Part shown: piece after piece, positions 60,103-64,000 of the stretch
How positions within the stretch are numbered: the stretch's first letter is position 1
How the letters are laid out: every line of letters starts with the position of its first letter
From: Rebecca billardiae RCC1528
Taxonomy: Eukaryota > Protista > Haptophyta
NCBI GenBank assembly: GCA_965240325.2
Contig: OZ251237.1
Span: 1,178,001-1,242,000, forward strand
Reading direction: 5' to 3'
Length of the DNA: 64,000 nucleotides
Position numbers and translations under genes: made by a program
The notes under the pieces: model-generated
What the model saw: the letters and a program-made list of their open reading frames with translations, nothing else
What the model was told of the DNA's origin: nothing
Databases searched by the model: none

Positions 60103-63100
60103 GCATGCGCCCTGAGTGTGAAGGCCTCCCCCCCTTTCATTCCTTTGATGCCGCCATCGTATTTCGTAGTATGGGGGTACCGTGACGGTATGTTTGACTC
60201 GCGTGAAGCCGGCATAGGTGGGTGCGGCCGCCCGGCGAAGCCGCACGAAGCCGGTGAAGCGGGCGCGCGGTGGCCACGGTCGCGGCGATCCGCGCAGTCT
60301 AGCGGGTGGCGAGGCGACAGTGGGCGCGTCCCAGTCGGTCGCCGACGTGCCGCGCCCTGCCGACCAGCCGCCTTGACGCAATGGCCCGCCGACCCCCGGC
60401 GTCCGCCTGGGCTACGTGCACGCGGCGATTTGAATGAGGCGCGCGCTGCCGGCTGGCAAGGAATTCGACGAGGGCGAGGACGAGGGTGATGAGGAATGGA
60501 TGGCCGTAGACACTGTGAGCGCTGGCCTCTCTGCTGACTCCAGAGCGCCGCACGCGCACACGTGCAAGCACCCGTCTGGCGCGCCTCCGCATGGCAGAAG
60601 GCGGATCGTCTGTGGTGAAGTGATCCGGAGATACCTGGCGTTGAGTCGCCCCCTTCGGCGGAGGCAAGTTGGCGAGGAGTGTGTGCCGACCCGTGCTTCG
60701 CCGCGGACCCGTCCGCGTGTGGCCCCGCGACGTGCGGTCTCGCTGCGCCCCCGCCCAGCACTGCTTGGTGCCTGGCTGCGGCGCAGGCGCAGGGCTACCT
60801 GGCCGCACGCTCGTCAGCAACAGGCTGACGCGGCGACCTGCGGCTCCAAATGGCAGCAGCGGCGGGGTGGTGGTGGAAGAGCGCCATGCCTTACATAGCC
60901 ACGGTGTGCGGTCGGCAGGTGCCATCGCCAGTGACCGCCGAGCGGCGACGGCTGAGCTGAGCTGCATGGCGACTGCGGAGCCCGCCGAGCGTCGAGCCGC
61001 GCGCCGCGCCCGGTCGCCCGAATCGGCGGAGGGCAATCGCCTGGACGGAGTCGGCAGCCTCAGGCCTGCTCGGTTGGTCCGCTCACCCCGCTGCCGCCAG
61101 CAAGGAGACTATGCGCTTAGGCTGGCGCACATGAGACAGTATACGTATGATCGTCGCCGTGCGGTGAATCTCTGGCTGCCCGCGCGCGCGGCGGTGCGCA
61201 TGCACGGTGGGCGGGCTGATCTGTGATCATCCGCCCGATGTTGCTCAATGGCGGCTGACCGTGGGGGTGACTGTGGAGCTGGGGGTGGGAGGTGGGGCAT
61301 GACGCTCTCCTACTCTTGCCGCAAGGTCCCTCGCGGTCGTCCCGCGCAGCGATTCCCGCACTCGCCCCTCGCCATCATCACGCGCCCTCAGCGGCGCGCC
61401 GCTGCGCGGCGGCGCGCCCAACCCAGCCGGGCGGGGCACGCGCTCGCGTTTGCTCCCACCTCGCCCTCGAGACGAGCGCGGGCGGCGGGGCTCCTCCTCC
61501 TCCTCCTCCTCCTCCTCCTCTTGCGCGCGCCGGCGCCGGCGGGGCGGCTCCTCCTCCTCCTCCTCCTCCTCCTCATCCTCGCCGGCGCCGCGGCCGCCGG
61601 CAGCGGCGGCGCCGCTGGCGCCGCCGCCGGAGAGGGGCCGCCGAGGGCCAAGAGGGGCGGGAGGGGCGGCAAGGAGCCGCGGCCTGGAATGACCTGCGCG
61701 AGCACGGGTGTCGCCGATGGCGACGGCTGTCGCCGGCTGTCGCCGATGGCGACGGCGCCGGTGCGAATGGCAGCACGGACGGTCGCGGGCGCGTCGTCCA
61801 TGCTGGCTTCAGCGCGGCTTCAGCCCGCTTCAGCGGGCTTCAGCGGGCGTGAAGCCGCGCTGAAGCCGCACTGCGCGTCGCTTCAACATTGTGCTGTATT
61901 GTTGCCCCAAACCGTATCTGGCTTCACCCTCTACTAGTAGTATATAGAACGTATACCGTATGGTACTGCGTAGAATGACCTGGAGACCGCAGGCTTCTGA
62001 GACAAACGCGTGAAGCGCGCTGCTTAGGAGGGGGGGGGGGGGCTCCTAAGCAGGGCCTGGAGTCCGGACGCGGCCGCCGCTGCCGCGGGCGCTGCGAGGT
62101 TTGAGTCCGGGTCGCCCTTCCCACGTCGCGCCGCCGCGCGAGAACGCGACGTAGGCCGCGAGGACGTCCCCCCGCGCGCGGCGCGTGGTGCGCCGAGCCA
62201 GAGCACGTGTACTGCCGCCCTCTGCCGCGGCTCGTCACCTCATCTCACCCGCGTTGCTCAGCGCGGGCGCCGTGCGACGCCGGCGACGTGACTCAGCTTG
62301 CACACGCCGGATGAGAAGCTGCACCCAGAGGCCGAGCTGCGCTCTAGCCCCTGGTGCGCCCGGTGGGCAGCGTGCACATGGATGTTATGCGTCTTCCCCG
62401 CGCTCAGTGGTCTGTCTCGAGGCGTCTCTAGAGTGAGTTGTTGGCTCTGCTACACGACTGCGTTTGAATTGCGCGTGTCGACGCACTCTGTCATGCCCGT
62501 GCGTGGGCAGTGTACGTCCTCAGGTTGCGGGCGCACGCGCGCGCCTGGTCGCAGTAATCATAGGCCTACCCGACACCAACGATTTTGGGTCCTGCACGGT
62601 CATCAGGTGGGCGCAGTGCACGTGCGTGCGCGGTGCGAGTTGCATCCAAGCCGCGACGCCTTTGCGCGCGCTGCTCGCGTTGGCGGAGAGAGGCGAGGAG
62701 CGACCGCCGACGCGTACCTGGGGACTACGTATGACCTTGGTCGACTACCAGCCTCGTCGCGTCCGCGCGCACGGGCCGTATTCGTCCGCACCGACGCTCG
62801 CGAGGTACGCTAGCAGCGGCACCGGGGGCACGGTGCCGCCTTTCACGGGTTTGAGTCACAAGCCGCAGGCAGACGGCGGCGGAACCTTCTGGACCTGGCT
62901 GGTACTCTCCGCCATCGCACTCGCTTCACGCGAGTGCGATGGCGGAGGGCTGCGCCCGCCGAGTAACGATGGCGGCGCAGTCCGGAGGAGAGTACCAGAC
63001 AGCTTCTGGACGCAAAACTGATCGACGAAAATGCAAATCCCACTAATTACCGAGAGCTCGCGCCGCCGCCGGCGCGATCCGCCGGCGAAACTGCGACTCT

Positions 63101-63156
63101 CCGACCTCCGACCTCCGCGGTCCCGTCTCGCCCGGCTCTCTCGTCCCACCACGACC

Positions 63157-63520
63157 ATGGATCTCTTCAACGTGCAGCCGCTTGAGTTCGACACGACCGT
63201 GGAGGTCGAGGAGAAGCGCCACCACCACCACCACCAGTGAGCGCGCGACTTCCACGCGCTGCGCGCCCCCCTTCGCGCGACCTTCCCTTTTACGCCGCAA
63301 GCGCGCTGACCATATTTGAATTGCGGCGCGCGTCACCTGCTGCGCCAGCCGCCACCACCACGCGGTCGAGACGGTGGAGCTCGATGAGAAGCGCCACCAC
63401 CACCACCGCCACCACCGTCACCACGAGGCCGAGAAAGTCGAGCTCGATGAGAAGCGCCACCACCACCACCGCCACCACCACCACCACGAGGTCGAGACCG
63501 TCGACATCGTGCCGATGTAG
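63157..63520 (+). CDS. Small histidine-rich triple-repeat peptide (83 aa); exons 63157-63236 and 63349-63520
   Basis: ACCATGG start context; intron GTGAGC...GCTGAC...CCAG; the spliced frame continues the repeat exactly and ends ATG TAG. Confidence 0.75.
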
Positions 63521-64000
63521 GCGTAAAGGCCCGTAGGCACGCTTCACACCGTGATGCATGGCTCTCGAGGACACCTTCCTCTGGGCTGTCGTCGGTGGTG
63601 CCTCGTCTCGCGTCGTCGACGTCGTTTGGCCGCAGTCAGCCGGCGCACTCACGGCCATTGCCTGAAATTGGCACGCGGACTACTGACTGCAGCGTCTGCA
63701 GCTGGTTCGCGCCGTCCGCCGCGCGGTTCGCGAGCCGTAGTCCGGCCCTGCGAGCTGCCAGGAGGAGTAGGTGTGTACTGTCTCGCCGGCTGCTACGACT
63801 TGACCGACGATCTCACGATGACGATCTGACATGCATCCGCGAGTATTCCGACGCGATGGCGTATTATGATCGGCTACGCCGATCTTCGGGTAGTAAACAA
63901 CGAAGTTGAGGGCGCACGGCCCTAGCTAGTTCCGCGCGTGGCTGCGTGCGCCAGCTGCGCGCACCCGCTGTGCCCGCGTTGAGCCCATGCGAGCGCCGCG

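Follow-up and report, generated by a model that had tools for sequence, protein, structure and literature searches.

Small histidine-rich proteins and histidine-rich protein segments are known from several settings in which they bind or manage metals. In Helicobacter pylori, Hpn and Hpn-like are small cytosolic His-rich proteins that act in nickel storage and detoxification. HRP2 of Plasmodium falciparum consists of repeats of 6-9 residues (AHHAHHAAD) and binds haem, histatins are short His-rich peptides that bind zinc and copper, and transporters of the ZIP and CDF families carry cytosolic His-rich loops that sense or bind metal. Histidine tracts also act in nuclear-speckle targeting and in pH-dependent interactions. 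Repeated cores behind a leader are found in the precursors processed by Kex2/kexin, such as yeast alpha-factor, the fungal KEPs and the ustiloxin/phomopsin-type precursors, all of which enter the ER via a signal peptide. Marine algae face vanishingly low and fluctuating concentrations of Zn, Co, Ni and Cu, and to our knowledge their intracellular buffering proteins for these metals are largely unknown. Here we describe a putative spliced gene for a His-rich mini-protein at positions 63157-63520 of the window (the whole 64,000-nucleotide stretch of haptophyte DNA that was analysed), and we compare it with its relatives in the same genome and with the systems above.

The gene is read from the forward strand and opens with an ATG at 63157-63159 in the context ACCATGG. 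The 123 nt before this start (63034-63156) are pyrimidine-rich, contain no ATG and probably form the 5′ untranslated leader. Exon 1 (63157-63236; 80 nt, equal to 26 codons plus CA; 86-90% identity to the paralogues described below) encodes MDLFNVQPLEFDTTVEVEEKRHHHHH followed by the trailing CA, and comprises the start codon, the leader MDLFNVQPLEFD, the acidic linker TTVEVEEKR and 5 2/3 His codons of the first His/Arg block. A phase-2 intron of 112 nt follows (63237-63348, GTGAGC...CCAG), in which a branch-point-like CTGAC (63306-63310) lies 43 nt before the 3′ end. It splits a His codon after CA, and the codon is completed by the first C of exon 2. Beyond the split His, exon 2 (63349-63520; 83-91% identity to the paralogues) encodes RHHHAVETVELDEKRHHHHRHHRHHEAEKVELDEKRHHHHRHHHHHEVETVDIVPM and ends with the stop codon TAG at 63518-63520. 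In order, it carries the remainder of block 1 (RHHH, ending at 63361), the linker AVETVELDEKR (63362-63394), block 2 with the sequence HHHHRHHRHH (63395-63424), the linker EAEKVELDEKR (63425-63457), block 3 with the sequence HHHHRHHHHH (63458-63487) and, just before the TAG, the tail EVETVDIVPM (63488-63517).

The predicted product has 83 residues (~10 kDa), including 26 His, 18 Asp/Glu and 11 Lys/Arg, and begins with a 12-residue leader, after which come three 21-residue repeats. These each consist of an 11-residue acidic linker of alternating Val and Glu that ends in (D/E)EKR and a 10-residue His block with 1-2 Arg. Tandem Repeats Finder reported a 63-bp unit present 2.6 times with 85% matches (63343-63504), which equals the 21-residue period. 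A first-pass annotation of this DNA had proposed the same model from the letters of the sequence, and our analysis reproduced its start codon, intron, second exon, product length and His count at exactly the same coordinates; its three 21-residue repeats agree with the 63-bp tandem unit and with the read-out of the exons, and the His codon is split as it had said. It had also stated that the open reading frame track misses the gene, and the listing for the window indeed yields only fragments of it (ORFs of 69 aa and 48 aa). Translation might instead begin at an ATG farther upstream in the same frame (63031), giving an additional Arg/Ser-rich stretch; this start was rejected, as neither the ATG nor the stretch is conserved in any paralogue.

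Three further loci were found by a DNA search of the organism's own 72-Mb assembly: a pair on C5 (C5a and C5b) and one on C29, which we compared with the copy in the window (C20). A profile built from exon 2 found exactly 4 loci in the genome and scored 99.5 bits on the C20 locus; an additional match of the DNA search on C3 proved to be a plain (CCA)n tract and not a family member. In the four-way alignment, the copies become similar at the ATG, lose this similarity within the intron and are alike again from the acceptor up to the stop codon. Between C20 and the other three loci the exons are 83-91% identical, versus 46-50% for the intron, 43-53% for the 5′ flank (100 nt upstream) and 28-39% for the 3′ flank, and the same pattern holds between loci overall (introns 46-58% and flanks 23-53%, versus exons 83-91%). 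The spliced frames are open in C20 (252 nt), C5b (252 nt) and C29 (261 nt). All five introns are GT..AG introns of 107-134 nt that lie in phase 2 within a His codon, and the block-1 intron occupies the same codon position, in the same phase, in 4/4 loci, with lengths of 112, 134, 134 and 121 nt and a diverged sequence.

The substitutions between copies also follow the proposed frame. Differences at codon positions 1/2/3 number 4/5/14 between C20 and C5b (23 coding positions) and 7/13/21 between C20 and C29. By the method of Nei and Gojobori (NG86), summed codon by codon with the exons left unjoined, dN/dS is 0.23-0.27 in the proposed frame (Fisher P 0.002-0.0002), compared with 1.6-19 in the other two stop-free frames (a Thr-rich sense frame and a Val-rich antisense frame). 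One antisense frame also has a low dN/dS; its wobble positions coincide with those of the true frame, and it is interrupted by 2-3 stops. A 122-residue poly-Val ORF on the antisense strand (63290-63658) was rejected as a competing gene, as it extends over the intron and the 3′ flank, neither of which is conserved, and dN/dS in its frame is 4-19. Because no orthologue was found in the organisms searched, these values describe selection between paralogues only, and the paralogue dS of 0.28-0.53, well below the saturated divergence of the introns, points to strong codon bias (the genome has ~68% GC) or to gene conversion limited to exons, either of which inflates the apparent constraint.

Conservation confined to the exons, the retained phase and position of the intron and a dN/dS of ~0.25 in this particular frame together make it very likely that the His-rich locus is a real, intact and spliced protein-coding gene of the nuclear genome. 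We infer that the C20 gene is transcribed and, from conservation alone, that it is spliced. The first-pass annotation had already claimed a spliced gene hidden from the ORF track, and three further loci that appear to keep the same spliced frame now bear this out. The opposite view is that the locus is no gene but a CAC-type microsatellite or minisatellite that is open by chance and was spread by a mobile element. Its (CAC)n-like blocks and 63-bp tandem repeat would fit such an origin, and pure (CCA)n tracts exist elsewhere. However, a satellite does not account for copies whose similarity is bounded by start and stop and drops in the intron, the copies have no common flank, which a mobile element would require, and the third-position excess of differences is found in the proposed frame only. 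CAC repeats slip easily, yet the block length is held at 10 residues. We consider this explanation largely refuted already and highly improbable.

As seen in C20, the signature of the poly-His/Arg family is the leader MDLFNxQPxEFD, three units of acidic linker, EKR and His/Arg block, and the tail ETVD(I/L)(V/L)PM followed by the stop. Block length is 10 residues in 8/9 blocks of the three intact copies, and the His content of these nine blocks ranges from 70 to 100%. Changes within blocks are nearly all exchanges between His and Arg, plus one His to Tyr, and it is block composition that appears to be preserved, not the exact sequence. The C29 paralogue (C29:993943-994431, minus strand; 86 residues) has two phase-2 introns of 121 and 107 nt at homologous sites in His blocks 1 and 2, and its third block has 13 residues (YHHHHGHHHHRHH). 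Its second intron would mean either that the repeat unit once held the intron or that the other units lost it. C5a (C5:2164552-2164939, minus strand) and C5b are convergent twins whose stop codons lie ~730 bp apart; their introns are 97% identical and their 3′ flanks are unrelated. Compared with C5b, exon 1 of C5a has an insertion of two nucleotides (AC), which puts the aligned donor out of frame; a GT four bases beyond that donor would preserve the frame.

The leader connects these genes to a second group. A degenerate pattern for its first eight codons (MDLFNxQP) matched exactly nine places in the 72-Mb genome, with no extra match at one mismatch and 0 for the reversed control. All nine open His-rich mini-genes: the 4 poly-His/Arg loci and 5 intronless His/Cys frames of 99-100 residues, four of them on C19 (44-54 kb) and one on C36. 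Each of the nine has a purine at -3 and a G at +4 and is free of ATG for 98-250 nt upstream. Searched with its own profile, the His/Cys family comprises six loci in the genome (C19:44509-53633 and C36:241421-241717), including a truncated one that lacks residues 1-21 (C19:52038-52271). The proteins read MDLFNVQPVAFELEK-HSTCASHGKHRAYHANGHYHCAHR-EADVVDLVP-(acidic spacer)-VEEKG-HTCASHGKHRAYHANGHFHCAHR, with two cores per protein of the C-x2-H...H-x-H-C-x-H type.

The two groups have in common the leader, MDLFN(V/I/M)QP(V/L)xF(D/E), a small size, repeated metal-ligand cores, acidic spacers and an N-terminus without a hydrophobic run. They differ in that the His/Cys proteins have no introns, a long acidic spacer and two cores of 24 residues, each with two Cys and 6-7 spaced His. 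BLASTP of exon 1 against one His/Cys relative gave 9/12 identities (E 2e-6), E-(E/K)-K stands directly before each core in both families and VD(L/I)(V/L)P after a core; in a profile-profile comparison (hhalign) nothing beyond the leader was matched, so that only these short flanking motifs are common. AlphaFold models the 99-residue His/Cys relative with a pLDDT of 48, each core forming a weak beta-hairpin (pLDDT 55-66). Judged from these shared motifs, the leader seems to join the poly-His/Arg and His/Cys genes into a wider ten-locus set of His-rich mini-genes. This link between the two families, together with the C20 and C29 members, is new.

Within the window, the C20 gene occupies a ~1-kb single-copy island between repeats. 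Upstream lie a ~460-bp dispersed repeat (61500-61965; at least 10 copies, 94-99% identity) and a ~873-bp repeat (61992-62864; represented on other contigs by at least 15 copies of 94-100% identity, of which several reach 100%), which ends ~290 bp before the ATG; downstream, a further dispersed repeat runs off the end of the window (63861-64000; at least 8 copies, 99%). A nested inverted repeat lies inside the island, 155-260 bp upstream of the ATG (62895-63002; 19-bp arms with 89% identity that carry GGTAC/GTACC), and contains a perfect 18-bp hairpin with a 5-nt loop (62907-62947; arms 62907-62924 and 62930-62947). It has no second copy in the genome. No 8-mer in the upstream regions is common to five independent lineages.

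The ~873-bp repeat is a recently mobile non-coding element, and its insertion may have cut the promoter of the C20 gene. This raises the possibility that the family is real while the C20 copy itself is silent or decaying into a pseudogene, its promoter lost to the transposon insertion 290 bp upstream. The near-identity of the repeat copies, the nearby repeat from 63861 and the frame-shifting insertion already present in C5a are in line with such a fate. On the other hand, C20 shows no damage to its start context, frame, donor and acceptor sites, branch-like motif or stop, and its divergence from the paralogues has a dN/dS of ~0.25, though most of these differences could be older than a recent insertion. 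On balance, we regard decay of the C20 copy as unlikely.

Searches for relatives elsewhere used the exons one by one as queries. A word search with exon 2 gave 2026 candidates, none with E ≤ 0.01, and one with the 99-residue His/Cys relative gave no match. The exon 2 profile found 0 hits at E ≤ 0.001 among 1.84 billion representative proteins; composition filtering is not the reason for this, since the profile recovers its own locus with 99.5 bits. Pattern scans of metagenomes for the leader and for the two-unit KRHHH...EKRHHH architecture returned 0, as did a pattern scan of viral contigs, and the ESM Atlas held no usable match. Among Pfam families, the sole alignment of any family member was to a ZIP His loop (E 8.2; 6 bits against a cut-off of 35.1), which is compositional, and among PDB sequences none was significant, the best being HIPP (E 0.96). 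The literature gave no account of such a protein, and the motifs appear in no paper. Haptophyte nuclear sequence is sparsely represented in these collections, so the blank should be read as "not detectable here" and not as "unique to the species". The earlier description of the peptide as possibly undescribed thus agrees with the lack of a relative in proteins, metagenomes, viruses, Pfam, PDB and papers, and is tempered by the scarcity of haptophytes in what was searched.

What the protein might do has to be read from its composition and from its relatives. Its N-terminus, MDLFNVQPLEFDTTVEVEEKR, is acidic and without a hydrophobic run; by inspection there is no signal peptide, as the first-pass annotation had noted, and a cytosolic location is therefore probable. 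The sister family has Cys/His cores in place of the His blocks, so that the common denominator of the variable part would be metal-ligand chemistry. This makes multivalent metal binding a better candidate than a role that depends purely on charge or pH. A cytosolic metal-binding mini-protein is thus the best reading, and we hold a physiological role in metal handling to be about evenly balanced between true and false. In such a protein the imidazole blocks would bind divalent transition metals (Zn, Ni, Co, Cu) in a multivalent and reversible manner, the apo form would owe its solubility to the acidic linkers, and the leader would serve a job common to both core types, for example partner recognition or turnover; the protein would act as a metal buffer, store or hand-over protein.

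The neighbours of C20 are a GT61 glycosyltransferase, an Atg22-like MFS transporter (L010:4406-6712, together with the next gene 4.4-9.6 kb past the window end; PF11700, 1.6e-15) and an EsV-1-7 array, an open frame of 1000 residues with 14 cysteine-rich motifs (L010:6580-9579; PF19114, 2.5e-174). Those of C29 are a malic enzyme, a formin and an RPGR1_C protein, and none of the neighbours at these two loci is metal-related. Only the C5 pair has a metal transporter nearby (1/3 loci), a ZIP-domain open frame at a distance of 2.4 kb (C5:2167369-2169504; PF02535, 2.9e-32), which is directly followed by a fragment of a copia-type reverse transcriptase (PF07727, 3.7e-17). No conserved neighbourhood was found among the family loci on C20, C5 and C29. 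The cytosolic metal buffer that had been favoured earlier is therefore supported by the absence of a hydrophobic N-terminus and by the His/Cys sister cores, while genomic context speaks for it at one locus in three.

AlphaFold predicts exon 2 as one long helix with a pLDDT of 61, which is uninformative, and the idea that the Val/Glu-alternating linkers form a beta-meander found no support in it. Low-confidence prediction is also what would be expected of a disordered or single-helix protein, and it has been counted in favour of a pH-switchable or condensate-forming disordered protein in which metal binding is incidental. At neutral pH such a protein would be net negative (18 acidic versus 11 basic residues), and acidification would protonate up to 26 His; the resulting block polyampholyte would associate with itself, with nucleic acid or with membranes. 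The strict alternation of acidic and His/Arg blocks in a fixed 11+10 period suits this proposal, as does the tolerance of Arg in the His blocks, Arg being no metal ligand. It sits poorly with the sister cores behind the same leader, whose paired Cys and spaced His are what one expects of metal sites rather than of charge switches. We consider a pH switch rather improbable and retain metal binding as the preferred interpretation.

The layout of the gene also recalls a multi-core precursor, as had been raised in the first-pass annotation with reference to the KR/kexin motif. A leader would recruit an enzyme, and a kexin-like or other protease would cut after (D/E)EKR and before the next linker, freeing His-rich decapeptides that could be metallophore-like or, as histatins are, antimicrobial. 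The leader is conserved over two families with different cores, the cores are repeated, and each core has conserved flanks (EEK(R) before it; E-x-x-VD(L/I)(V/L)P or AVETVE after it) with a core sequence that is free to vary. In the three intact poly-His copies KR precedes 9/9 blocks, and no basic site follows any core. However, inspection reveals neither a signal peptide nor a hydrophobic stretch, hence no route to a Golgi kexin, and the dibasic KR is unconserved in the His/Cys sister family, which has EK-H, EEK-G, EEK-H and EKK-H at this place. No protease or modifying-enzyme gene is common to the neighbourhoods, and we know of no such precursor system in the algal cytosol. The lack of a signal peptide and a dibasic site that the His/Cys genes do not conserve take weight from the kexin reading, and the whole chain of precursor, processing and released decapeptides strikes us as improbable.

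A broader proposal is that the ten loci represent a lineage-restricted modular system of cytosolic mini-proteins, in which one leader and a set of core-flanking motifs are combined with interchangeable metal-ligand cores. The members of this system would be either algal trace-metal buffers of a new class, tuned to different metals, or multi-core precursors that dispense with a signal peptide and rely on a leader-recruited partner for processing or loading. We offer this as a speculative scheme with a small chance of being correct as a whole. If it were true, ten tiny genes with ligand-rich cores on a common leader would be concrete and easily testable candidates for metal buffers. Standard ORF and domain annotation cannot detect genes of this kind, and the present case shows how spliced mini-genes escape annotation.

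Set against the described systems, the closest likeness of the C20 product is to Hpn and Hpn-like, which are likewise small and soluble, have no signal peptide, consist of about 1/3-1/2 His with consecutive runs, and provide a working model for function. No sequence match that would indicate a relationship with Hpn was detectable in Pfam, PDB sequences or the 1.84 billion representatives. Moreover, the Helicobacter proteins are bacterial, have Cys pairs (Hpn) or Gln-rich tails (Hpn-like), and are without the 21-residue acidic-linker period or the leader. Kexin-processed precursors are similar in having a leader and then several near-identical cores, each preceded by Lys-Arg; unlike the C20 product they have a signal peptide, whereas here the His/Cys proteins do not conserve KR and the neighbourhood holds no gene for a processing enzyme. 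HRP2 is likewise built of His-rich repeats in tandem, separated by acidic or Ala spacers, and histatins share the character of short His-rich metal binders, but both are secreted and unrelated in sequence. The loops of ZIP and CDF transporters have comparable His runs, while the mini-protein has no membrane domain and its Pfam match is compositional only. By analogy, then, the mini-gene appears to resemble small His-rich metal binders such as Hpn in kind and to be unrelated to them in descent, with a leader-plus-core design of its own.
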